Below are positions 1-55,106 of a DNA stretch of 64,000 nucleotides, piece after piece. Each line of letters starts with the position of its first letter. Position 1 is the stretch's first letter. The position numbers and the translations under genes are program-made. The stretch spans positions 114,381-178,380 of the forward strand of contig VRVR01000056.1 in the NCBI GenBank assembly GCA_009859145.1. Direction: 5' to 3'. This DNA is from Andalucia godoyi And28. Lineage: Eukaryota; Protista; Jakobida. The notes under the pieces were generated by a model. It ran no database searches, was not told the DNA's origin, and saw nothing but the letters and a program-made list of their open reading frames with translations.

Positions 1-3000
1 GGGTCCATGGTGAGAGACACAGAGGTGCACCCACGATTCACTGTACAGATCATCGAGTGAGGGAGGCAATGCAACCTTGGCCGAAAACGAATCCTCATTC
101 GGTCGATGCATCATCATGCTTTTGCCGACATTGAGCAAGAAAACAAGGGACATTGTCCCATTTGCAGTTCTTTCGACGGAAACGGCAACGGAGCAGAAGT
201 CTTCACGCTTGCCGTGTTCGTTAACGATTGACAGAATCATCCAGCGTCCTTCATGCCGGGGCAGGCACAAATGGCAATCGAATGCCCAGCCATTGGATGG
301 GGGTGGTGGGAAGACCATGCCGTCCAGTACTCGAATCATTGACTTTGCACGTGATTTGTCCTCTCTGCCTACCATTTTCCAAATGTTATCCCTCGAGATC
401 GACACAAGATGTCTGCTGTACGATGACGAAACCTTGTCGGATATCGCATCAACAAACCTCAATACCCTCGAGGAAGGAGAAGACATCAGTTCCTGGATTG
501 TTGAAAGAAGTGGCATCGGAAACATTGAGGAGGCTAGCAAGCAAGAAAACAAGGCGTGAAAAGCATCTGACGGGAAGTACAGCCTGCCAAATCTCGAAAA
601 AAGAGCCAAGATCTGTTGCTGGACACCGGATTCCGTGAGACGGTCCGCAAGGCTCGGGACTGGGAAGAAGACAATCGGAAGCAAACGAGAAACCAACACA
701 TCTGACAGACGACTCCTCGCCACGATTTCGATCTGGATGGGGTGGAGAGCTGACATGAGAATCTCAATTGTGGAGGAAAGGTACGATGACGACAGATATG
801 GATCTGGGCATTGAAGCAGATAGTGGACAGAGCATTCCGCGACAGTTGCAATCAGATGAGGGATCACAAGTCTCGCCTTGCATCCTCCCTGCAGACCAGC
901 AAGAAAGTCTGCCACAAGACCGTTATCATAAGGAGAATTGTCATCAAAATGTTCTCGAATGGAAGCGGTCCAATGCATGACGACGTCGGACAGTGAAGCA
1001 GCATCATCATCCGGTCGACCAAGAGCCAGTTCGTCACTGAGTTGTAAAATTTGAGACAGTGGAGAAAATCCAAGGGACACAGCAAGCATCCAGCTTAAGA
1101 GATGAATGCATTCCAATGCCGTTTGCGAGTTTCGCATAATACCAGACCGGTCAAACATTGGTGCAACCCATTCGTAGGGCGCCTTGAACCGCAAGCGAAG
1201 AAGCCGATCCGTCTTGTTAATCGCCTCCGACGAATCGAAAATAACAAGACTGAGAAGCGCAAATGACCGAATGCAAAACGAGAAGTCGTGAATTTTCAAA
1301 TGAATTGCAGACAACAACACCGGAAGACCACCACAGTGCAAAAACAAGCGAGCAGAAGACGGACGATCGAGAGCAACGACATGGACCAGAAGGGTAATGA
1401 GTTCTCGAGATGGGCGCGACGAAAGGCAATGGATACAATCCTCCATAAACGTTTCTTTTGCCATCGCGGATTCCGAGGCATACAGCTGGCATAAAACAAG
1501 CAGGCACGTCAGAACAGCAGTGTCGTCGGGAGATGACCCAAGAGAGTCGTTAAAAATGGAGAATAGTTCCTTCCAGCTTGAATGCAGGGCTCTGTGCAGA
1601 TCCAAACTCGAGGATCTCATGAGAATGATGTTGCACAAGACATACACCGCAACACGTGGATCATCTTCGCATTGAATATCGTCCTTCCTTCTCCGACAGC
1701 AAACAATCAGTCCACGAATGGCATCGTCTGTGTGAAGAATGGGCCGGATGCTAGCATCCGGCAAATCAGATCTGCCTTCCGAAAGATACCATATCTTATC
1801 CACAACCATCCTTCGAACTCTCGGACTCGGGGAGTGCAGCAGTTGAATGAGACGTGGGTAATCCCGTCGATTCACCAGTCCTCCGGCAATAGCATCCGTA
1901 ACTGCGTTGAGAACAGCACGCTGCGTCGACGCGTCCGTTGCCGAAAGGGCTTCTGGAGTCAGCAGAAGCTTCGTTGGCGAGCTGCGATTCCAGACACGGT
2001 AACTGCGCGCCAGCGAGAAGACCCGACAAGCCGCATTACACAGATCACTTCTTTGCGCACGAACACCCACAGAGAGCAATATCGTAAATATGCTTTCTTC
2101 AATGTCGTTCAGCGCCCCTGACTCGATGCTACTGCGTGGGAAATGGCTTTCAATGATGCGAAGAATGTCGAACGCAATCACGTCCCTGTACGGCGCAAAA
2201 AACGAATTGCGAGAGCTTGATGTGTCGGGAATCATCACTATGTGCACAACGCCGGATATCAGCTTGGAGAGAGAGCTGAAATGGAAAGATGCTGGGTCGG
2301 ATCCTCTGGGATCGTAGAAGGCGCGAGAAAGAAGATGGTCCAGACTAACGAGACCGACCAGTGACGCGATGACGGACAAGCGTCGCGCCGTCGGTGCATC
2401 CTGTTCTTGAACCGCTTTGACGCACAGTTCCCCTACCTTCTCCGCAAACGCAGCCCGAATTTCAAACGAATTCGACTGCAGTATGCAATGCCGGCTGAAG
2501 ATCAGGCACACGGCGAGCCCGACCTCCGAATGGGTCGATTTTGCAGCTGCAGAAACGACGTTGGCCACGACCTCGGACGCAATCGACGGGTCCGTTGGGT
2601 CCAAAAACTTGTGGGTTCGGTAGCAATAGGATGCGCGGAACAGCAGCAGCAATGAAGGATGGAGATTGGCGAAATCTGCGTATTCGACGACTGAATCTGG
2701 ATGAATCACGAGTCTGTTCACGACATGCATATCGGGTCCTCGCTCATCATCCTGAGCTGGATGGGCGCTACGAACCATGTTAAACGCGAGAAACTGAGAA
2801 GCACAACCAAGCACACCAATCGGCAGCTTTTTCCTGCAGAATAAGCAGCACCGCGCAAGCAAGTGCAGCAGCACAAATGCCTCGTCCAACACCGCCTGCG
2901 AAAACGCCATTCCGTTACCCAAACCCGCAATATTCAGCAATTGGCACGAGCACTCAAACATCAGCTCCGCAAAGAACTTGCGCTCTGTCGGCGTCACAAA

Positions 3001-38130: not shown

Positions 38131-40131
38131 TCATTGTGCATCGAGAACGAGGTCTGCGATGAGATCGACTTTCCAATGAAGCGCCCACGCGCGTATTCTC
38201 TGCTTCCACTCACGAAGCTGGAGAGTTGCTTCGGAAAACGCTCTTCCTGATTTCGAGTGGGGGAAAGTGGGTCCGTTGAGAAATGCCGCTTCGTTTCTCA
38301 ACATGACCAGTGCTTGCTCCAGAAGCCCATTCCGACACAGCCGCTCGATCTGCTCGCCCTTGTGAACAGGAGTGTCTGGATCGAACTCGGGCTCATGGAT
38401 GAACACCGTATACTCCGCCACGGGACCCCGAACATGGGCAACAAGCACCTCAAACGCAGCAGACTGGCCACTGCTGTGCATGACTTCATACGTCGTCGAT
38501 CCAAACGCGCTGTCGAGGGCTCCACTGCCTGTGGGGCTCGCCGTAGGAAGCAGACTCGTCCCCACGACTGTCGCCGATGGATTTCGAACACGCGCAGCGC
38601 TTGCATTTGTAAATGGAGAAGGCGACGGAGAGACCAAGGGCGAAGGAGAAGGCGAAGGCGGTCTGGGGCTTGAGACAGGTGCCACCAGCGAAGAGGAAGA
38701 CGACGCCACGGAACCAGCACCAGCACCAGCATCTGGGTGCACAGTGAAAGCGAGTCGCGGTCCCATATGAGAAATCGCAATTGTGGAAATGGGTGATTGA
38801 AAACCGGCGACAGAACGAGAAGCAACCACAGTGCCGACAACATGAGAAATCGCATCGACAAGCGCAACATCGCCATCGCCGTATCCCACAAGCATCACAC
38901 CACCACCGCGAGAGCTCGGCACAAATACGACATGGCAAATGTCAAACTTAGAGTCAAGCGGACGGAATGTGGAGGCGTCTTCGAGATTGACGATGGATCC
39001 ATCGCGAAGACCGACGTACGGATATGCGAGTGCAGAAAAAGACATGTTTCCGAGCGCCGATGAGGTGAGCAGATGCGGTGTGATCTTGCGTTCGGCAATA
39101 AGCTGCAGCATCGGCTGGGCATCTACCTGACCAGAGGAGGACTCCTCGCCCACGTGAGAAAGCGACCAGCGGGAGACAACCAGGCTGCCGTTCGACGATC
39201 GCAACGTTACAAACTGCGGGTGATGAACGGAGGCCGCAGGGTCTGACAAAGAATGCATCGCAACAGAACTCGCCGAGAGCCACTGTGCTGCATCACACAG
39301 CACTGGCGGAACTTCTTCAATCAAGCACGGAATCCCCAGCAAAATCGATTCTGCAGAACCACTGCCACTTCCACCTGCTGACGCAGCGCTAGATGATCCA
39401 GGAACTACAGAGGACCGGGGTGCAGACCGAGGCTGGAACGAGCACGAAAGGATGCGAATCGCTCCAGAGCCTTGTTTTGCAGTAGCGCTAGCGCTACCGC
39501 TGCTGGACTGCAAAAAGACCAGCGCAAGATGTGCCGAGCTGCCAGATCCAAGCGACACCTCCGAGATGGCCCAGTCTGCAGAGACTCGAATCATTGCACT
39601 GTTCTTCACGCTCTTTGAATCCTGCATGAACAGGTCCAGTTTGACCGGAGAAACAGGCGGCCGAACGAGAATATGTCGGTCGGCCGCAGTGACCCCAATC
39701 GACGCCGCCGAGCTGAGTGAGCCACACAGCAACTTCAGCGGAAACGCGCCGATGGACGCCCCAGAATGCAGATGCACAACCACTCCAGAGTCCAGCAGAC
39801 AAAGCGATCCGCGGATCGACAGTATCCGATTGCTCGACAACAGATGCCGGTCGCGCTGGCTGTGCTGCTTTACAAGAGATTTCGGCGGAGTCGCAGCGCG
39901 CTGAATCCGCGGGTACTCCTGCGGAACAGTTCCAGAAAGCATAGTCCCACCTTCCCTCTCCCTCTCCTTGTCCTTGTCCTTACCTGACAACGACGACGAC
40001 GACGAAGAAGAGGAAGAAGAAGAAGAAGAAGACAATATTAGGGACGGCGGTGCGCTCGACGGCTCCGAAGATCCATACACTCGAATTCGAACGTAGCTGG
40101 CAAACCTTTCCCTTGCTTCATCGTTGCTCAT
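38131..40131 (-). CDS. 666-aa protein, possibly WDPCP/Fritz-like beta-propeller
   Basis: Long ORF. LLDSGVVVHL, WAISEVSL, MLVGYGDGDVALVD and IERLCRNGLLEQALVML loosely recall WDPCP. Family is speculative. Confidence 0.45.
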   Translation of the reverse strand: MSNDEARERFASYVRIRVYGSSEPSSAPPSLILSSSSSSSSSSSSSSLSGKDKDKEREREGGTMLSGTVPQEYPRIQRAATPPKSLVKQHSQRDRHLLSSNRILSIRGSLCLLDSGVVVHLHSGASIGAFPLKLLCGSLSSAASIGVTAADRHILVRPPVSPVKLDLFMQDSKSVKNSAMIRVSADWAISEVSLGSGSSAHLALVFLQSSSGSASATAKQGSGAIRILSCSFQPRSAPRSSVVPGSSSAASAGGSGSGSAESILLGIPCLIEEVPPVLCDAAQWLSASSVAMHSLSDPAASVHHPQFVTLRSSNGSLVVSRWSLSHVGEESSSGQVDAQPMLQLIAERKITPHLLTSSALGNMSFSALAYPYVGLRDGSIVNLEDASTFRPLDSKFDICHVVFVPSSRGGGVMLVGYGDGDVALVDAISHVVGTVVASRSVAGFQSPISTIAISHMGPRLAFTVHPDAGAGAGSVASSSSSLVAPVSSPRPPSPSPSPLVSPSPSPFTNASAARVRNPSATVVGTSLLPTASPTGSGALDSAFGSTTYEVMHSSGQSAAFEVLVAHVRGPVAEYTVFIHEPEFDPDTPVHKGEQIERLCRNGLLEQALVMLRNEAAFLNGPTFPHSKSGRAFSEATLQLREWKQRIRAWALHWKVDLIADLVLDAQ

Positions 40132-40777: not shown

Positions 40778-42919
40778 TCAGGAGGACTGTGATGGGCCGC
40801 CGTCGGGACCCTGGCCACTGGAACTATGGGCATGTGCACCATGGCCCATAGGTGCGCCGAACTGACCACCCTGCTGATACGCATCATAGTATTGGGGGTA
40901 CTGGCGCATTTGCATCATCATCATCATTTGGGGGTCATATCCGGCAGCAGCAAGGTTCTGAGGATTGATAGGGTTTTGAAAGCCCTGGGAATTACCAAGA
41001 TTCTGTCCAAATGCAGGGGTGCTGGGCGCTGATGGCATGCTGCCGCCGCCACTCATGGACTGCAATCCGGACGCAGCGGCCGCAGCCGCAGCCGCAGCAT
41101 TCTGTTGTCGCATAAAAGCCATCTGCATTGCCTGGAGCTGATCCATGTTGAGGTTCATGTTGGGAACCTGCATTGGCACCTGTCCTCCTCCCATGCCGAG
41201 CTGCATGGAATGGAACGGCATTCCCATTTGCATGCCAAACATGGCATTGGACATTTGCTGAGCCTGCGCCTGCTGCTGGGCCGCTTGCGCGGACTGGGCT
41301 TGCACCATTGCTGAAATGGCAGCATTCTCTGGAATTGCCTTGGAGTTGCTCGGAAGGGACTTCTTCTTCTTGGACCGTGGTTCTCCATTCGCGCCTTTGC
41401 CAATGCTCTCGTCGTGGTTAGCAAGGGCAGCAGCAGCAGCCGCCGCGACCACAGGGTCCTTTCCCTTCTCGCCTTCCAGCATGCTCTCCAGCATTGGTCG
41501 CCACGTTCGGACACGAGCGTTGATGAACCAGTTGTTGAGCTGCGTCATCGTGAGGCCTGTCTGCTGAGAAAGATCGCGCTTTTCTTCCTCGGAAGGATAC
41601 GGATGCAAGAAATGCTGAAACAACCACGTTTTCAGGACATTTGTCGCGTTCTTGGGAAGATTGCCGCGTTTCTTGGCCTTGAGCAGGTACGTTTCCTGCA
41701 AATAAAATATGCGAGAAACATACTTCTCCTTGAGCTGTTCAATCACCGTCTCAAACTTTCGGTAGAGGGAAATCAATCGGGCGACGCGTTCTGATTCCGG
41801 AACAGGTCGAACCAATGAGTGCTTGTGCAACAACGCATCGGACCGCTGAAGCCAGGCGTCACGCTGTGCGCGAACGTACGCAACTTCGGTTTCGTAGTGC
41901 GATTGCAACGTTTCAAACCTGCCCAGAAACGCAGCGACGTCGTCCGAATTTGCGCGGTCCTTGGCTTGGGTCGACGCCGATGCGGAGGCGGAGGTGGCAT
42001 CTCCATCTCCGGAGCCCGAGTCGATCCGGCCGATAAACGTCTCGAGAATATCTGATTTCGACATTTCAATCAAATTTGCATTTCGCCTGCGTTCATTTTC
42101 GGAAGCCGCATTGCGAGAATCCGCCTGGCCGCCATTGCCATTGAGACTCGCGAGGGAAAGAGCATTCGGCGACTCCGTTGTCGCTGGTGCCGATCCAGCA
42201 GTTGCTGTCGCATTGCCAGATCCGGAAGAATTCGACAACACAGATGGGGGAATCTCTGCCAGGATTGTTTCCACTGGCTTGGTGAAATCGGCAGGAACAA
42301 TGAACGAATCGAGCAGCTTGCGAAGCGCATCGTACTGCGGATGTTGGACAAGGTCTCGATCACGGGTGTCTGGACTGAGAAGTCTCGCGGCCTCGATCTT
42401 GAGATGGTCGTATCTTGCCTTGACCACCGCGACGTACTGCTCGACGGTTATTTGCGGCGGAGGATTAAGATACATAGGCGCATTCACGGGAATTTGTCCA
42501 GTCTGCGATTGCAGGAAATGCATCATTTGCTCCGGAAGCAATCCCATCTGCTGCAGCGGCACAGCAGACGCAAGTCCCGGAAGTTGGCTTTGTGGCTGAG
42601 GAGCATTTGCAGGCAAAGCCGAGCCGGAAGATGAAGAAGATGCCGATCCTGACGACGACACGGACGAAGAAGAAGGATTTGCACTAGATGCGGGGACAGA
42701 AGGGGTTGCCAATGCTGGTTGGCCTCCCGCGGATGGCCCGGCGGAATCGATGCTCGTGGAGGCAGGGTTTTCAAGAGCGTCAGGGTTCTGGTTGAGGTGG
42801 TTGGGGTTAGGATTCTGGTTCTCGCTGTCCAGCGGTTCTTGTTTTGGGACTTCTGTTCCCTGAAGGGCTGCGTTCATGTGTGCTTCGGTTCGAGCAAGCG
42901 GATCGAATTGGATATTCAT
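40778..42919 (-). CDS. TALE-class homeodomain transcription factor A with MEINOX-like and PBC-B-like domains
   Basis: [62 protein letters not shown]; upstream LQSHYETEV...[15 protein letters not shown]...[14 protein letters not shown]. First ATG is 42919; the frame is open further upstream. Confidence 0.93.
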
Positions 42920-43890
42920 GATTGGCAATGGCGGTCCTCGTTTTCTAACCTTTGGTGTGTGGTGGCTCGGAAGTGGTGGCGGAGGTGGTGCTGCTGTGGG
43001 TCCAGTTGATACCGATGGTGAAGAAGATAGTGAAGATGGTGTTTTCGTAGATGGAAATCGCTGCAGATTGGCGGCGGAAGAGTGGGAGGTAGCGGCAGCG
43101 AGCGTAGCCAATAACTGAGAGTCGGAAGGTAACGGAGGGCGCCAAGACACAGAAGATTTGTTGATGGGCGCAAGACGGGTCTGAAGTGAAGAGAGGAGGC
43201 CCGGTATGAGAGGAAGAAATTGAGGCGGGAAGATCGTGCTGAGATTGGCTGGAAAAGTCAGAGTGCGATGGTGTATGAGAGTTCCTGGTCAGAGGACACG
43301 CGTTGGCATCCCAGGCTGTCCTGCTCGACGTTCCTTCCCTCCACCGTCTTCGGTGGTTGATGGGCTCTGAAGGATGATGCTCTCTCTGCTCTGCTCCGTC
43401 CATGCGGCTCAACCGATTTGCCGATGTGTGCAGAGAGACTGGGCAGAGTGCTGGGGTCTTTTTGCGTTTTGCCTGTCGGGATGGAACACGGTTTGCGAGG
43501 AGGGCGGGCACGACCAAAGGGCCAGAATCGGGGGTTTCCGGTCATTGATGGGGCGAGACAGGCCTCTCCGGTGCTCCAAGCCTCCCCCTTCTCCTTCAAA
43601 CTCACCAACCCTTGCCCTACCTGTACAGAAAACAAAAAAAAATGGAAAAAAAAACAGCAACAACGCTCCCCGTTTTGGCAAAACCCTGTCTGACCTCTGC
43701 TCCGCCCCGTTCCTGGCTTCCTCTCACATCAAGTCCATCAGCTCGTACGGTTTTGCCCGCCTCCAACCTTTTCATGATAGGTTTCATTTCTAATATATAT
43801 ATATATATATATGTATTTTTTTATAGTTCCGAAAACTTTACAAACGCCAGCCCCGCCGCCCATCTCCTGCACCGTTTTTTTCTTGGCTGC

Positions 43891-45600
43891 ATGAAATCAA
43901 CGCTGCCTTCATCGGAAGACCACGCGCGACTTCCAGATCCTGCCACGGATGCGACGCTTCTTGCAAACAACGGCAGTGCCACCTCCTTGTCCGAACAGCA
44001 ACAGCCGGCGGCAGTCACTGGACTACAGCCACCATCGGCGCATCTCCAGCGGCAGCGGCAGCTGCAGACTGGCACTCCGCAGCCGTGGCAGGGCCTGCTG
44101 TTGCCGCAACATGCTACTGGAGATCCGTCTGGATTCTCGAATGCCGGGATGCCGTACTTCCCAATTATGAGTGTCCAGGTATCCCAAATCCCACACCTGC
44201 AATCCCACGTCCATTCCACTCACATGCAGCAACAATGGATGTTGCAGCAAAATTCCTTTTCCATGATTCATCATCAGCATCAACATCATCATCATCATCA
44301 ACAACAACAGCAACAACAACAGCAACAACAACAGCAACAACAACAGCAACAACAAGAAGTAGGAGGAGGAATGGCCGAAAAATCGTCTCGACCGGATGCC
44401 GCGCAAGATGCAGAGACGGCGGGTCCGAACTCTGCGAATGGCCGTTGGGACGCAAGTCAGGCCGCGAGTCAGGCCGCGAGTCAGAGCCTGGAGCAGGGGC
44501 AGGCTGCGAACCATTCCCAGTCTTCTGCATCGACGGGGACCCCACAGGCCCTTGCGGGTGCGTCATATCCAATTATCGGGCATCAGCAGCTGGTGGACTT
44601 GCGTTACCGGTACGAGGCAGTCAAAACAGAAGCCACCAAGATCCTGTCGTTTGACTACTTTGCCGCAGTGAGCATGCTGCCGTTCGACCACGATGTCAAG
44701 AAGCTTCTTGATCAAGGGCGCCAGTCCGCAGACTTCCGCTTGCCAATTCTCAACAATCTCTTGCGAGTTCGCGGTCCGTCGGTGCGTGAACGGGCAGAGA
44801 CCGGGCTGGATAAGCCATTGATCGAAGGATCGGAAATCCAGATTTTGGAATTCCTCTTTCAGAAGCGGGATAACCCAGCGTTACAGATTGTCCGGTCTTT
44901 TGGATCGTGTTTCACGGTGCAGAATGCGGGCGTTGGAGGCTCGAGCGATCCGCAGAACACGCAAGCATTTCCAGTGCACCCGGTTCTAGTACCCAACCCC
45001 TCGATCCCTGAGGAAATAATAACGTTCATGAGCAACTTCCTCTCGCTGCAGCATCAGTACGCAATCGAAATGTCGTACATTTTCCAACAGGAGGAGTTTT
45101 GGCTGCAGTTGGCGGATACCATGCTCGCCCGACACTCTGCGACACGCGTCGTTTCCGAATCAGAGCGACTCTTCCGACTTTCGTACATGAACCAGATTTT
45201 TGGAAGCCTAATTTACGAACTAATTGAACGGTACTACGCAAAAATCCTGCTGCTCTGCGACAAGTTCGGCCCAAAGCAAAAGAGAAGGGGAAATCTGTCC
45301 AAGCACGCGGTGTCGATTCTTCGAACCTGGCTTCTCGAGCACATCCAGCATCCGTATCCAGAAGAAAAAGAAAAGAAGGATCTCGCGACGAAGACGGGTC
45401 TTTCGCTGAATCAAATCAACAACTGGTTCATCAATGCACGCGTCCGTTTGTGGAAGCCATTGGTTCAGCCGACTCTCGAGCAAGGGCAAGGGCAAGAGCA
45501 AGGGCAAGGGCAAGAGGAAGGGGCAGCCGTCCATGCAAGCGCCTCCACCGCTGCAAAGGCTGCCGAAAAGCCCGCATCCAAGAAGCGCAAAACAGCATAA
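43891..45600 (+). CDS. TALE-class homeodomain transcription factor B with PBC-B-like domain and poly-Q/H
   Basis: [62 protein letters not shown]; upstream LQHQYAIEM...[15 protein letters not shown]...[14 protein letters not shown]; C-terminal KKRK. Confidence 0.93.
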
Positions 45601-46450: not shown

Positions 46451-49400
46451 ATGCAAATGATAAAATGCAGATGGGCGTCTGTGTTCTTGCTCCTTGTCTG
46501 TTGGCTGCTGGCCCTTGGGACTGCGCTGCATGCTCGTGCAAGTGTAATTGGAGCGGAAAGAGGGACATCAAGCGGACTGGATGATGCATCGTCATCCGAT
46601 TGTGCGGTGCTGTATGACCTGTGGTCAGCTACCGGTGGTATGCAAGGAAAGTGGTCTCCCAACACTACGAACTGGACTTTTCCAAATGGACCTGCTTCCC
46701 AGAATTGCTGTTCGTTTACAGGTGTCTCATGCGACTCTTCGTCAATGCGCGTGGTGTCGCTGAGCCTGCCAGGCATGCTTCTGACAGGACCTCTTCCGCT
46801 GTCCATATCACTGCTGTCTTTCGTCGTGTCGCTTGACTTGTCACAAAACTCGCTGAATGGAAGCATAGCCGATATTGCGTGGTCGTCGCTTCCTGTTCTC
46901 TCCAGCCTGGATCTGTCGGGAAACAAGTTTAACGGATATTTGTTCGCGTACTTCCCGCCGTCTCTGCAATACTTGGACTTGTCTGCGAACCAGCTGGAGG
47001 GATGCATCCCAGCACCCTGGCAAGGAAACACAGTCCTGTCCGTGCTGTTACTCCATTCCAACAAGCTCAGCTGCGAGTTCCCTGCGCTGTTGGTATCCTT
47101 TGCAAACCTTACCGTCCTTGATCTGGGGCAGAACAACTTTACGGGATCAATTCCGGGCAGTCTCGCGCAGCTTCAGAAGTTGGAACGCATTTCGCTCGTC
47201 CAAAATGTGCACTTGTCAAACCAGTTTCCTGCCATGTTTGTGACTTCCATGCCTGGTCTGCGGCAGATTCAGCTTGGCTGGTATCCAAATGCTCCCGCCA
47301 CTATGTTTCCTCCGTCGTCTTCCTGGAACTGCCCATCGCTCGAGATCCTTGATGTTCTGCAGCTTGGCCTGGTGGGCTCCATTTCCGAGGGCATTTGCAA
47401 GTGTCCTAACCTCCAAAATCTTATCCTCACCGCCAATCATCTCGTCGGACCAATTCCAGAGTGCCTTGGGGGATTGACAAAGTTGCAGCGACTGCTCTTC
47501 GCCAACAACAATCTTACGCTTCCCATCCCTTGTGCGGTTGCGCAGATGCAGAGCCTTGTTTCCTTTGCTCTGGCATACAACGACTTCAGCGGCGAAGTGC
47601 CGCCGTGTTTCTTCAACAACCCGAACATCACCGTCATCGATTTGAGTGCCAATCAGTTTTTCGGCAATCTTCCGGATACCATCGGCAATGCAACATCACT
47701 CGTATCATTGGACCTCAGCTACAATCAGTTTTCGGGCCCCATTCCCGCATCGATCGGCAATCTGCGGAACCTTGCCGAGGTGCATTTCCCTTTCAATAAC
47801 TTCAGTTCCTCGATCCCGTCCTCTTGGGTGAATCTAAAGTCCTTGGAAGTTGTCGATATTTCCCATAACCAGCTTGTCTCCGGGTTCACTGTGAATCCGT
47901 TCGACGCCGAGTTTCTGAGGTATCTCGACATCAGCTACAATGGGTTTTCTGGAGACTTGAGCGGTTGCTTTTTTTACCTGCCATCGATCACCTTTCTTCT
48001 GGCGTCCAACAACAACTTTTCTTCGGGGCTAACATCCTGTGGTCTCCCGATCCCCCAAAAGTCTATTCTCTCGGTTGTCGACATCAGCGAAAACGGATTT
48101 AGCGGCGAGCTGCCTCTTGTCTTCTGTGATCTTCCAGCGTTGCAGGAATTGCGGATTGCGAACAATGATTTTGATCATTTACCATCGTGCATTGCAGCAT
48201 CGAGTTCCCTGAAGCTGATCTCTGCTGCTGGAAACAATCTTCGTGATCTTCCCTATGATTCGTTATCCAGTCTCTTCCTTCTCACAAACATTGACATCTC
48301 CTCAAATTTCTTGGGCGCTGGAGGCAGACCGTTTCCTTTGCGCTTGTTTCAGCCACCATTTCGGTTATCGACGATCAACATTGCCAATAATTCCTTTGTA
48401 GGCCCGTTTCCCCTCAATCCGTGTTATGGACTCTCTGACACCATTTCTTCAGTCGACCTCTCGTACAACAACATCATAGGCATTGACGTGACGGATCCAA
48501 GAAATACCGGGCGCTACTGCGGAACGACATTTCCTTCGTTGTCCACACTGTCCATGGTCGGATGTGGGATTCCCCAAGTGTACGGTTCTCCGTACACAGT
48601 GCAGAGTTCCGGTTCTGTTATCGGGTCTTCCCGATTCTTGGTTTCCAGCATGCAGTATCTCGTTGAGTTTTTCAGTGGACTTCGGCAGCTCCAGATCGAC
48701 GATAATGAAGATCTGGAGGGTGCACTAGCGGAAGTTACGGAGCTTTCTGAAATGAGCTTCTTCAGTGCCACTGGAACTCGCTTCAGGCGGGGCTTGTACG
48801 ATGCAGAATTCCTGTATCTCGACCTGACGAGAACCACGTTCTATGACAATTTTGTATGTTTTGACGCTCTTGGGCATTCTGGGATTCTGTCTGCCCAACT
48901 GGACCCTTTCTATTTCAATTACACAAACTGTTACTGCAAAGAAGGGTTCTTTGGCAAGGCTCCCTTTTGCTTGTCCTGTCTGACGATTTTTGGGAAGAAT
49001 TTTGTCTGTCCAGGGCCGATGTTTTCCAGTACTACTAGGAATGACATCAAGTCAGATTCTGGCTTCGTTTTTGCGCAGGGAGGGTATTGGGCGTCTCCAC
49101 CCGTGTCGGTGGAAGAGATGCGCGCTGGAACTGCGTATCCGTCTCACATGGAGCCGTGCGCGTACTATTCGACCTCGCTTTCGCCATGCCGGCCGTCAGC
49201 GGATGATCTGTTCCAAGTGTGCAAGGAAGGGTACGAGGACCGGCTCTGTAGCCGGTGTTCGCGCGGCTACTATCCGGTAGGGTCGGTTTGTGCTCAGTGC
49301 CCCTCAAAGGCTGTGACAGGTGTTGTGCTGGTTGCCTATGTTTTAACGATCTTCTTGCTGACATTTCTCGGGTTTGTGAACCGCCCGTCGTCATCGGGGC

Positions 49401-50440
49401 CGATCAAGGTCCTTGTATTTTTTCTTCAAATGTGTTCTTTCATCATTGTCCCATTCCCAAACTCATCCGCAACTGCAAGCAGGTTCTTCTCCGTATCTCA
49501 GTATTGGATTTCATTTGCACATGTCCATCCAGTCACGTCCCCTCACTGTTTTGGGTCCGAGCTCTGGAGTTTCGAATTTTCGTACTGGATGCGCCTGTCG
49601 ATTCCGATCCTACTGCCCGTTTACGTGGGCTGCATCGTTGGATTGTTCTGGCTGGCCAAGAAGGCCAATATCCTAGTTCAGGCGGCCAGCGTCGTGCTCG
49701 CGAGATGGAGCCAGGCGCTGATCTTCCTCATGTACTTGCTGTACATGACTGTTTCCGAAGCCGTCATGCTTCCGCTGCTGTGCTCGAATGATCCGGGTCT
49801 GCATCGGGACTTCATGGTCAACGTCCCCTATCACGAGTGTTCTCCGACGCTTCAAGCCGTGTCTTCTGTGGCGTTTGTGTTGTACGTCGTGGGCCTTCCT
49901 GTGTCCGCATTCTACTTAATGCGCCGGCAAGGATGCCGAAGCATTGTTGAATTTCTGATGTCTTCCTACACGAAGAACATGAAATACTGGGAGTTTGTGA
50001 TTGTTGTGCGCCGAATCCTCGTTCTCGTTCTGTTCTCTCTTGTTTTTAGCACTTCCATCTGGCAAGCTTTTCTGGTTGGACTGACGCTTGCATCTTCCTT
50101 GTTTTTCCAGGTGTACTTCCAACCTTACAACGTGGCGGTTGACAACTATGCCGAAGCCGCATCCTTGGTCCTCTTGCTCGTCTTCTTCTCCCTGTACTTG
50201 CGAGTTGACGCTCCATTTGTCGGTGACACAACCGGAATGGTTGTGGCGTCATTCTTGCTCCAAGTCAGTTTCATTGCGTTCATGATGGGTCTCATCTTTC
50301 TTCGAACAAGACTCTACCGGATTCTTTCGCAGAGGCTCAGCTCGAAAAACAAGCCCGCCGACGTCCGTATGCGTACCGAGACCGTGCAGGAAATGAATGA
50401 ATCCCTGATTGCCGTGATGCATCCAAATCAGTCCTTATAG
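46451..50440 (+). CDS. Cell-surface protein: signal peptide, LRRNT cap, about 20 plant-type LRRs, Cys-rich EGF-like segment and a multi-pass TM C-terminus
   Basis: CCSFTGVSCD cap; LxxLDLSxNxLxGxIP repeats; CKEGYEDRLCSRCSRGYY...CAQCP; about 9-10 hydrophobic helices with FLMSSY...YWEFVIVVRR. No kinase domain. Confidence 0.85.
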   Translation: MQMIKCRWASVFLLLVCWLLALGTALHARASVIGAERGTSSGLDDASSSDCAVLYDLWSATGGMQGKWSPNTTNWTFPNGPASQNCCSFTGVSCDSSSMRVVSLSLPGMLLTGPLPLSISLLSFVVSLDLSQNSLNGSIADIAWSSLPVLSSLDLSGNKFNGYLFAYFPPSLQYLDLSANQLEGCIPAPWQGNTVLSVLLLHSNKLSCEFPALLVSFANLTVLDLGQNNFTGSIPGSLAQLQKLERISLVQNVHLSNQFPAMFVTSMPGLRQIQLGWYPNAPATMFPPSSSWNCPSLEILDVLQLGLVGSISEGICKCPNLQNLILTANHLVGPIPECLGGLTKLQRLLFANNNLTLPIPCAVAQMQSLVSFALAYNDFSGEVPPCFFNNPNITVIDLSANQFFGNLPDTIGNATSLVSLDLSYNQFSGPIPASIGNLRNLAEVHFPFNNFSSSIPSSWVNLKSLEVVDISHNQLVSGFTVNPFDAEFLRYLDISYNGFSGDLSGCFFYLPSITFLLASNNNFSSGLTSCGLPIPQKSILSVVDISENGFSGELPLVFCDLPALQELRIANNDFDHLPSCIAASSSLKLISAAGNNLRDLPYDSLSSLFLLTNIDISSNFLGAGGRPFPLRLFQPPFRLSTINIANNSFVGPFPLNPCYGLSDTISSVDLSYNNIIGIDVTDPRNTGRYCGTTFPSLSTLSMVGCGIPQVYGSPYTVQSSGSVIGSSRFLVSSMQYLVEFFSGLRQLQIDDNEDLEGALAEVTELSEMSFFSATGTRFRRGLYDAEFLYLDLTRTTFYDNFVCFDALGHSGILSAQLDPFYFNYTNCYCKEGFFGKAPFCLSCLTIFGKNFVCPGPMFSSTTRNDIKSDSGFVFAQGGYWASPPVSVEEMRAGTAYPSHMEPCAYYSTSLSPCRPSADDLFQVCKEGYEDRLCSRCSRGYYPVGSVCAQCPSKAVTGVVLVAYVLTIFLLTFLGFVNRPSSSGPIKVLVFFLQMCSFIIVPFPNSSATASRFFSVSQYWISFAHVHPVTSPHCFGSELWSFEFSYWMRLSIPILLPVYVGCIVGLFWLAKKANILVQAASVVLARWSQALIFLMYLLYMTVSEAVMLPLLCSNDPGLHRDFMVNVPYHECSPTLQAVSSVAFVLYVVGLPVSAFYLMRRQGCRSIVEFLMSSYTKNMKYWEFVIVVRRILVLVLFSLVFSTSIWQAFLVGLTLASSLFFQVYFQPYNVAVDNYAEAASLVLLLVFFSLYLRVDAPFVGDTTGMVVASFLLQVSFIAFMMGLIFLRTRLYRILSQRLSSKNKPADVRMRTETVQEMNESLIAVMHPNQSL

Positions 50441-53552: not shown

Positions 53553-55106
53553 ATGAGCTCGTCTACTTCTTCGCTGTGGGTATCGGAAGATGTGGAGTTC
53601 CCCACGTTTCCTAAGCTTGTCGGTCGCGACCACTGGTACGATGTCGTTGTCGTTGGTGGCGGCATTTCGGGATTAACCTGCGCAGCACTCCTGAAGCAAG
53701 CTGGCAAGAGGGTCGCGGTGGTCGAAGCTGCAAAGTTTGGACCAGTTGGGACGACGCACAGAACGACTGCGCATATCACGCATATCGAAGACACTGAGTT
53801 CCACAAAATGATTGGTGCCTACGGGCTGCAGGCGTCGTCCGAGGTGGCGCAGGGTATGTCTGCAGCGTTCGACCTGATTGAGAGGCTTCCGAAAGAGTGT
53901 TCCTTTGAATCTGGGAACGACTTTCGGCGCGTTCCTGCGTATCGGTATGCAGAAACATCCAAGGACAGCAAGAAGGTAAAAGAGGAGTTCGCTGCGCTGC
54001 AGAAAGTTGGCATCGCATGTTCGCATCCGTGCCCCAAGCCGGATTCGCTACTGTTCGACGTGCAGTACTGCGGTCGAGTGGAAAACCAAGCGTTGTTCCA
54101 TCCCATGAAACATCTTGTTGGTCTCGCCAAATTCGTCCATAAAGAAGGCAGCGCCGTGTTTTGCGAGTCGCGTGTCACAAAGTATGGAGACAGTACGTCG
54201 ACGAATCCGAACTGCTGGATTGAAACAGATGGGAAGGCAAAAATACAGTGCAGGGACTTGATCATCGCCACCCATTCACCGACCGGGGTGTGGCTGTCAT
54301 TGCATCCTCGACTGCTTCCGTACCGCAGTTATGTAGTCGTGGCTCGCATTCGAGGGAAGCTGGAAGATGCGATCTACGACGACACCATGGATCCCTACCA
54401 CTACATTCGGCCGTACAAGAAAGGAGGGGATGATTACGTGATTGTCGGTGGGGAAGACCATCCTTGTGGTGAGAAGTCCGACACCATGGAGTCCTTTGCT
54501 GTGCTTGAGGAATACACGAGAAGCAGATTTCATGTCGAAGAAATCAAGTATCACTGGTCTGCGATTTATTTTGTCCCGACCGACCGACTGCCATACATTG
54601 GTCGCGGGCCAACCTGCCGCAATATTTACGTTACCACGGGATACTCTGGATGTGGAATGGCGTACGGCACGCTGGGAGCCATGCTGTTGCGAGACATCAT
54701 AACGGGGAAAGCGAATCCGCTGGAGAAGGTGTTTTCGCCGAGCCGAATCAAACCGCTTTCTTCCTTCACGGGACTGATGGAAGAGACGTGGCACAATGTC
54801 AAAGGAATGGTTATCAACCGTCTTCCTTCTTTCAAACCCACCCAGTTCTCTCCTGATAATCTCCGTCCTGGACAAGGGGACGTCGTCACCCACAAGGGGT
54901 CCAAAGTTGCGGTTTTCAAAGACCAAGATGGACAGGTTCACACATACTCGGCAGTGTGCACCCACATGGGTTGCATTGTGGCATGGAATGATGCAGAAAA
55001 GCATTTCGACTGTCCTTGTCACGGCTCTTGTTTTGATGCTAAAGAAGGTTCAGTTAAATCCGGGCCGGCTTGTGTCGCTTTGCAGCGCAAGGAGCTGACT
55101 TGGTAA
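53553..55106 (+). CDS. FAD-dependent oxidoreductase (DAO family) fused to a C-terminal Rieske [2Fe-2S] domain, YhfW-like
   Basis: DVVVVGGGISGL, GTTHRTTAHIT, LPYIG, TGYSGCGMAYG; Rieske CTHMGC...FDCPCHGSCF. Confidence 0.92.
   Translation: MSSSTSSLWVSEDVEFPTFPKLVGRDHWYDVVVVGGGISGLTCAALLKQAGKRVAVVEAAKFGPVGTTHRTTAHITHIEDTEFHKMIGAYGLQASSEVAQGMSAAFDLIERLPKECSFESGNDFRRVPAYRYAETSKDSKKVKEEFAALQKVGIACSHPCPKPDSLLFDVQYCGRVENQALFHPMKHLVGLAKFVHKEGSAVFCESRVTKYGDSTSTNPNCWIETDGKAKIQCRDLIIATHSPTGVWLSLHPRLLPYRSYVVVARIRGKLEDAIYDDTMDPYHYIRPYKKGGDDYVIVGGEDHPCGEKSDTMESFAVLEEYTRSRFHVEEIKYHWSAIYFVPTDRLPYIGRGPTCRNIYVTTGYSGCGMAYGTLGAMLLRDIITGKANPLEKVFSPSRIKPLSSFTGLMEETWHNVKGMVINRLPSFKPTQFSPDNLRPGQGDVVTHKGSKVAVFKDQDGQVHTYSAVCTHMGCIVAWNDAEKHFDCPCHGSCFDAKEGSVKSGPACVALQRKELTW

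Follow-up and report, generated by a model that had tools for sequence, protein, structure and literature searches.

Here we describe two TALE homeobox genes, gene A and gene B, that lie head to head in a 64,000-nucleotide stretch of the genome of the jakobid Andalucia godoyi And28 (assembly GCA_009859145.1, contig VRVR01000056.1, positions 114,381 to 178,380; hereafter the window). The two genes are paralogues, both are members of the known PBC/PBX/GLX (non-KNOX) TALE group, and gene B has evolved far faster than gene A. By analogy with better characterised TALE proteins, we favour, with moderate confidence, the reading that they are inverted tandem duplicates whose products may serve as alternative partners for a KNOX/MEIS-class TALE protein encoded elsewhere. 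An initial annotation of the window had described two head-to-head TALE genes about 970 bp apart, and this was confirmed, since both open reading frames (ORFs) are present, each encodes an HPYP loop and a WFINARVR motif, and 971 bp separate their start codons.

The similarity between the two proteins is, judged from their alignment, far above chance, with 31% identity across 371 aa (BLASTP, E 6e-49) and 44% identity in the core. The two shared upstream blocks to which the initial annotation had drawn attention are both present (A aa 169–181 versus B aa 240–252, and LQSHYETEV...RPVPESER versus LQHQYAIEM...RVVSESER), and beyond these there is a third, LIEMS..IL..F.GR in A and LIEGS..IL..LFQK in B. 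The upstream blocks of A also occur in Stygiella and in the orthologue of B introduced below (P0312), and they may be a remnant of PBC-A. At the very N-terminus, heterolobosean orthologues of A (P0005, P0006 and P0010–P0015) share a conserved MTLPN(K/R)xxY(D) motif; gene B begins with MKSTLPS (43891–43910), and in gene A a stretch resembling the heterolobosean start motif crosses the annotated ATG (42919–42960), with 77 further codons open upstream, without an ATG, as far as position 43150.

Both proteins contain a Homeobox_KN domain (PF05920; Pfam E 3e-20 in A and 9e-20 in B) with the three-residue insertion of TALE proteins, seen as an HPYP loop between helix 1 and helix 2, and both retain W48, F49, N51 and R53 together with the helix 3 sequence WFINARVR. 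Protein A additionally matches the PBC profile PF03792 at 29.4–31.5 bits against a cutoff of 25, over the PBC-B half only, and the A-type proteins of Stygiella and Acrasis likewise pass this cutoff in the PBC-B half. A profile of the family aligned with a metazoan PBX (P0093) over PBC-B and the homeodomain (hhalign, probability 99.5%, E 2e-22). For B, transitive homology points to a PBC-B-like region: it aligns with that of A, it keeps the conserved residues of the family, and it is modelled by AlphaFold2 as a helical hairpin, whose two long helices (query residues 147–191 and 196–232, pLDDT above 90) run into the homeodomain. The modelled homeodomain of B is closest to that of MEIS1 (5ego_A; TM 0.95, rmsd 0.5, 55% identity), in agreement with the Ile50 of WFINAR and not with the Gly50 of animal PBX. 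A fold search with the PBC-B hairpin of B returned no solved counterpart, the match being confined to the homeodomain.

Assignment of A and B to the KNOX/MEIS class was ruled out, because Pfam detected no KNOX1/KNOX2 or Meis_PKNOX_N domain in either full-length protein (E up to 0.1) or in their N-terminal parts (E up to 10). Membership of the strict metazoan PBC class was also ruled out, since both carry WFINARVR instead of WFGNKRIR and the homology covers the PBC-B half only. A search with the core of B recovered Cyanophora paradoxa tig00020927 and red-algal (Timspurckia) PBX-type TALEs. PBX-Glauco and PBX-Red classes have been defined for glaucophytes and red algae, and a Cyanophora sequence numbered 20927.63 serves there for comparison of the PBC-B-like (PBL) domain (Joo et al. 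2018, PMC6219170). The PBC-B evidence, the lack of a KNOX/MEIS domain match and the Cyanophora and red-algal PBX-type matches place A and B in the PBC/PBX/GLX group.

Gene A belongs to an orthologous family that extends across jakobids and heteroloboseans. An identical 713-aa protein is present in EukProt (P0001), and orthologues were found in Stygiella incarcerata (P0003/P0313), Acrasis, Willaertia and Naegleria. The closest relative, P0002 from an uncultured organism, is 77% identical to A in a 158-column core, and its homeodomain is 97% identical, compared with 82–90% for the Stygiella and heterolobosean orthologues. Synteny in related protists had been put forward as a check in the initial annotation. 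In all four loci read (Naegleria fowleri, Willaertia magna, Acrasis kona and one 37-kb contig), the A-type gene is solitary, with no second TALE detected by tblastn in the 10-kb flanks. A scan of JGI metagenome contigs with an A-type profile yielded seven loci, of which five are shorter than 3 kb. As a separate observation, P0211, a variant A-type protein near-identical to the Stygiella incarcerata protein P0003, has unrelated sequence inserted at two points within its homeodomain, after HPYPSE and after NNWFIN; these insertions look like retained introns, in which case the places where they lie could be relevant to arguments on TALE ancestry that use intron positions.

Gene B, in turn, has an orthologue in another organism. 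An exhaustive phmmer search with the B core returned a single B-type cluster, P0170/P0312 (E 3e-54), which matches 295 of the 303 query residues, including the N-terminal block, and scores above A itself. Both a Logan contig and a JGI contig encode this orthologue, which is intact at 490 aa. The same exhaustive search found no heterolobosean or Stygiella protein closer to B than the A-types are. A word-indexed search with full-length B returned homeodomain-level plant and animal matches only, probably spoiled by the His/Gln run of the protein, and one with the B core recovered neither A nor any B-type. Protein B itself was absent from the protein collections in two word-indexed searches and one exhaustive search, and an exact look-up of three start variants also failed, unlike for A and several neighbours, which are present in the EukProt set for Andalucia godoyi. 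This absence suggests that the public gene set probably lacks an annotation of gene B. Among the other matches to the B core, P0171, P0172, P0180 and P0190 carry 6–10 tandem TALE-like homeodomains per chain, with six matched stretches in P0171, the sole one of these read.

The surroundings of the B-type gene could be read on a contig of the relative (L009). About 810 bp 5′ of the B-type gene starts a divergently oriented ORF beginning MATPTASNMPFTTPVQ... (positions 1–105, minus strand), which is cut off by the end of the contig. The 34 aa of this ORF present on the contig have no significant similarity to A (E 2.3). A blastn comparison (E ≤ 1e-5) of the DNA 5′ of the B-type gene with the window gave no matches. 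On the other side, a NeuB-like gene lies 3′ of the B-type gene, unlike in the window, and synteny is thus not kept there.

To place the duplication in time, we used a neighbour-joining tree built from distances, with bootstrapping, together with identities calculated region by region and in the 158-column core, also with bootstrapping. The tree groups A with P0002 and B with P0312, each at 96% bootstrap. The existence of a B orthologue in another organism and the clustering of the B-types support the initial annotation in that the duplication is not recent. Identity of the B-types to the Andalucia-like A-types in the PBC-B part is 41%, compared with 27% to the Stygiella A-type and 28% to the heterolobosean A-types (58%, 57% and 55%, respectively, in the homeodomain); the PBC-B value for Andalucia-like A against Stygiella A is 44%. 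Over the 158-column core, the B-types are 48% identical to the Andalucia-like A-types and 40% to either outgroup, with bootstrap P > 0.999 for their being closer to the former. We take these comparisons to mean that the gene was duplicated within the jakobids, at about the time of the separation from Stygiella or later, but before the uncultured relative branched off, and that the two copies then diverged with strong asymmetry.

The asymmetry itself is pronounced. Among the A-types, identity is 35–61% in the PBC-B part and 82–97% in the homeodomain; B and its own orthologue P0312 are 47% and 54% identical in these regions, and the homeodomain of B is just 54–58% identical to that of any A-type or of its own orthologue. 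Expressed as homeodomain difference, 2.9% separates A from P0002 and 45.6% separates B from P0312, which is roughly 16-fold. Nevertheless, B keeps helix 3, the HPYP loop, the invariant homeodomain residues and the PBC-B signature residues.

An older origin of B, in which the duplication would predate the split between jakobids and heteroloboseans, B would have been lost or missed in Stygiella and Heterolobosea, and B-types would represent a second ancient Discoba TALE class, appears rather unlikely to us. The B clade does fall outside the Discoba A-type clade in the neighbour-joining tree, but this node has a support of 32% and B sits on a long branch. In the core, 14 columns are uniform in the Discoba A-types and differ in both B-types, which at several of these columns show states that are frequent in other supergroups (RLWKP versus RTWRP, for example). 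On the other hand, the PBC-B part puts B closest to the Andalucia-like A-types, and the exhaustive search, with its single B-type cluster, returned no heterolobosean or Stygiella sequence closer to B than the A-types are.

A within-jakobid origin underlies the explanation that we prefer and to which we give somewhat more credence than doubt. Within the jakobids, on the Andalucia branch, the single Discoba PBC-homology TALE gene would have undergone an inverted tandem duplication. Gene A, evolving slowly, would have retained the ancestral role, and gene B would have retained the recognition helix, the TALE loop and the PBC-B hairpin, with fast change in its other homeodomain surfaces and in its C-terminal tail, so that the two proteins would have a common DNA-recognition chemistry and different protein-contact surfaces. 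Each would most likely act as the DNA-binding partner of a hypothetical KNOX/MEIS-class TALE encoded outside the window. Instead of pairing with A, B would offer that protein an alternative to A or compete with A for it, in the manner of the fast-evolving green-algal Class-B and Mam-B paralogues.

The analogy draws on several known systems. In the characterised KNOX/BELL and MEIS/PBX dyads, a PBC/BELL/GLX-type protein is joined to a KNOX/MEIS-type protein, and both kinds, PBC-type and MEIS/KNOX-type, are represented in Naegleria by one TALE each (PMC6219170). The two non-KNOX paralogues of three green algae each bind KNOX and not each other, and the fast-evolving paralogue has been proposed to modulate the KNOX/GLX dimer (PMC6219170). 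These chlorophyte pairs (GLX/Class-B and Mam-A/Mam-B) resemble A and B in being a lineage-specific non-KNOX duplication after which one copy diverged rapidly in its homeodomain and interaction domain. They differ in that their binding to KNOX, and not to each other, has been demonstrated, whereas for A and B it is predicted by analogy, and head-to-head linkage, a feature of A and B, is not reported for them.

In domain architecture, A and B are most readily compared with the non-animal PBC/PBX/GLX TALEs (PBX-Glauco, PBX-Red, GLX and Naegleria gruberi ID 78561; PMC6219170), which likewise have a PBL domain directly N-terminal to a WFINAR-type homeodomain. A is an orthologue of the heterolobosean member of this group, and the B core recovers its Cyanophora and red-algal members. 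Compared with that group, A and B are duplicated in inverted tandem, one copy is much faster, neither PBC-A nor a MEINOX motif was detected, and pairing with KNOX/MEIS would hold for them by analogy. Animal PBX/Extradenticle, which acts with MEIS/PREP, has the TALE loop in common with A and B, and A shows PBC-B homology to it above the Pfam cutoff, in line with the hhalign result. The animal proteins differ in helix 3, which is WFGNKRIR with Gly50 compared with the WFINARVR of A and B, where Ile50 is MEIS/KNOX/BELL-like, and in their PBC-A region, which is undetectable in A and B.

Several points weigh against pairing with a KNOX/MEIS-class protein or against the history set out for it. The partner in Andalucia is itself hypothetical. 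PBC-A, through which the animal proteins bind MEIS, was found in neither A nor B (Pfam E up to 10; hhalign), and B has no direct Pfam PBC match, its orthologue P0312 reaching E 0.11. The long B branch attaches to the tree with the low support given above, and the signature columns that bear on the timing of the duplication are ambiguous, at nine against nine, for which reason timing was judged from the region-wise identities with bootstrapping. That one uncultured relative carries both the A-type P0002 and the B-type P0312 is probable, on the strength of consecutive JGI sample numbers. Finally, OUROBOROS (ORO) and SAMSARA (SAM) of Ectocarpus bind each other via their homeodomains, without KNOX/PBC logic (PMC6368402), and pairing of same-class proteins is therefore conceivable.

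Such pairing is what the initial annotation had proposed, with A and B as a heterodimer that is co-regulated from the spacer and acts as a life-cycle or mating-type-like switch. We disfavour this as quite improbable. In the version that we considered, A and B would be a young lineage-specific dyad, for which we see a similarly small chance: after in-place duplication of a self-associating PBC-type ancestor, rapid change in the surfaces of B would have converted a homodimer into a heterodimer, which would gate a sexual or encystment transition not observed to date in jakobids. The divergent genes with their 971-bp spacer fit this proposal, as does the retention of the duplicates since before a speciation, and very fast evolution of homeodomain surfaces with a conserved helix 3, as in B, is seen in some sex-related regulators. 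A homodimerising proto-TALE that gives dyads by duplication has been proposed by Joo et al. (PMC6219170), the homeodomain-mediated ORO–SAM interaction offers a precedent (PMC6368402), and a divergent ORF starts about 810 bp 5′ of the B-type gene in L009. Against it, A and B are both of the PBC-homology class and neither has a KNOX/MEIS domain, same-class paralogues failed to interact in the three green algae (PMC6219170), the A orthologues have no adjacent partner in the four other loci, and the L009 ORF lacks significant similarity to A. The neighbouring genes are housekeeping genes, and divergent pairs are the default in the A. godoyi genome (PMC7050145).

Two known switches illustrate how far the resemblance goes. 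The basidiomycete HD mating locus (Ustilago bE/bW, Coprinopsis HD1/HD2) also consists of two divergent homeodomain genes with a short spacer; A and B are same-class paralogues with 44% core identity, whereas the fungal partners belong to two classes, HD1 and HD2. Basidiomycete HD genes are multiallelic with variable N-termini, and active dimers form only between the products of different alleles; the A/B locus was read from one haplotype. Ectocarpus ORO and SAM are, like A and B, both TALE-class proteins without canonical KNOX/BELL domains, and they interact via their homeodomains, but their function has been established genetically, whereas any such role of A and B would be a prediction. To our knowledge, ORO and SAM are not reported to be adjacent genes or close paralogues of one another, and we know of no sexual cycle described for jakobids, which also counts against a switch formed by A and B. 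If such a dyad did exist, it would offer a present-day instance of the proto-TALE-to-dyad step postulated by Joo et al. for early eukaryotes.

The arrangement of the genes carries little weight here. The window is compact and almost without introns, with a GC content of about 52%, and it contains at least six other divergent ORF pairs with spacers of 357–1210 bp; the head-to-head layout and the spacer length of A and B are nothing special. This agrees with the genome as a whole, which is about 20 Mb in size, with few introns, short spacers and neighbours that are often divergent (PMC7050145). Co-regulation of A and B from their common spacer may occur, in a layout that is the genome default. 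Rfam and tRNA scans of the spacer gave no matches, no TGACAG (MEIS-type) site is present in it, this hexamer being under-represented window-wide, and apart from a (TA)n run the spacer repeats comprise nothing above chance-level matches. The (TA)n microsatellite itself, at about 43792–43821, lies some 70–100 bp 5′ of the gene B ATG and is a possible TATA-like or length-variable promoter element.

We also consider it distinctly improbable that B is redundant, is under relaxed constraint and is on its way to being lost, with no function of its own. In favour of this reading, its homeodomain has changed about 16 times as much as that of A, it lacks a direct Pfam PBC match, and it is absent from public protein sets and has perhaps never been annotated or detected in transcript form. 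Against it, its 569-codon frame is intact within 662 open codons (open from 43612), an intact 490-aa orthologue exists in another organism, the invariant residues of the homeodomain are retained along with the HPYP loop, helix 3 and the signature residues of PBC-B, and its fold is confidently predicted, with AlphaFold2 pLDDT above 90 over PBC-B and the homeodomain.

Table 1. Positions of gene A, gene B and their features within the window.
Feature	Position	Strand	Description
Gene A	40778–42919	−	Intact intron-free ORF, ATG at 42919, stop at 40778, 713 aa; TALE homeobox
A upstream conserved blocks	42026–42451	−	aa 157–181, aa 195–212 and LIEMS..IL..F.GR at aa 282–298; from alignments
A PBC-B-like domain	41684–41968	−	aa 318–412; Pfam PF03792, profile positions 90–180
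A homeodomain	41507–41674	−	aa 416–471; HPYP loop 41594–41605; helix 3 and conserved tail 41465–41536
Divergent spacer between both ATGs	42920–43890	none	971 bp
Gene B	43891–45600	+	Intact intron-free ORF, ATG at 43891, stop at 45600, 569 aa; TALE homeobox
B His/Gln run	44269–44355	+	aa 127–155
B upstream conserved blocks	44572–44865	+	aa 228–252, aa 267–282 and aa 309–325; also in P0312
B PBC-B-like domain (putative)	44986–45270	+	About aa 366–460; column-for-column alignment with A PBC-B
B homeodomain	45283–45447	+	aa 465–519; HPYP 45349–45360; helix 3 and tail 45418–45480

The genes around the pair are ordinary housekeeping genes: they encode a subtilase, a queuosine salvage protein, a VDAC porin, a CDP-alcohol phosphatidyltransferase, a 1329-aa leucine-rich-repeat (LRR) membrane protein, an alpha-galactosidase and a copine. 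The LRR ORF (46451–50440) matches DUF7630 weakly, and its C-terminal half is long and hydrophobic; its exact sequence is absent from the protein collection, and the public gene model may differ. Directly 3′ of gene A, on the same strand, a 666-aa Ser/Ala-rich ORF (38131–40131) has no Pfam domain. Further along the window, a 517-aa DAO-Rieske protein (53553–55106) clusters at ≥90% with the 417-aa EukProt entry ANDGO_01194.mRNA.1 (EP00762, Andalucia godoyi), which suggests two gene models. This match, together with the presence of protein A in EukProt, points to A. godoyi or a near-identical strain as the source of the window.

The A/B locus is a modest addition to a known family and no new kind of system. 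In the literature on TALE or homeodomain proteins together with Andalucia godoyi, none of the ten top-ranked papers mentions A. godoyi, and PBC-homology TALEs in Discoba were already known from Naegleria (PMC6219170). The locus adds jakobids to the lineages with a PBC-homology TALE, presents an in-place inverted duplication with extreme rate asymmetry, and indicates a gene, B, that is probably unannotated. No switch for the haploid-to-diploid transition is better conserved than the TALE dyad, and the occurrence of such dyads in Discoba, a group near some of the roots proposed for eukaryotes, bears on whether this switch reaches back to the last eukaryotic common ancestor. If a KNOX/MEIS-class partner of A and B exists, the three proteins would form a simple system, in a compact and almost intron-free genome, for studying how duplicated partners share one co-factor or compete for it.

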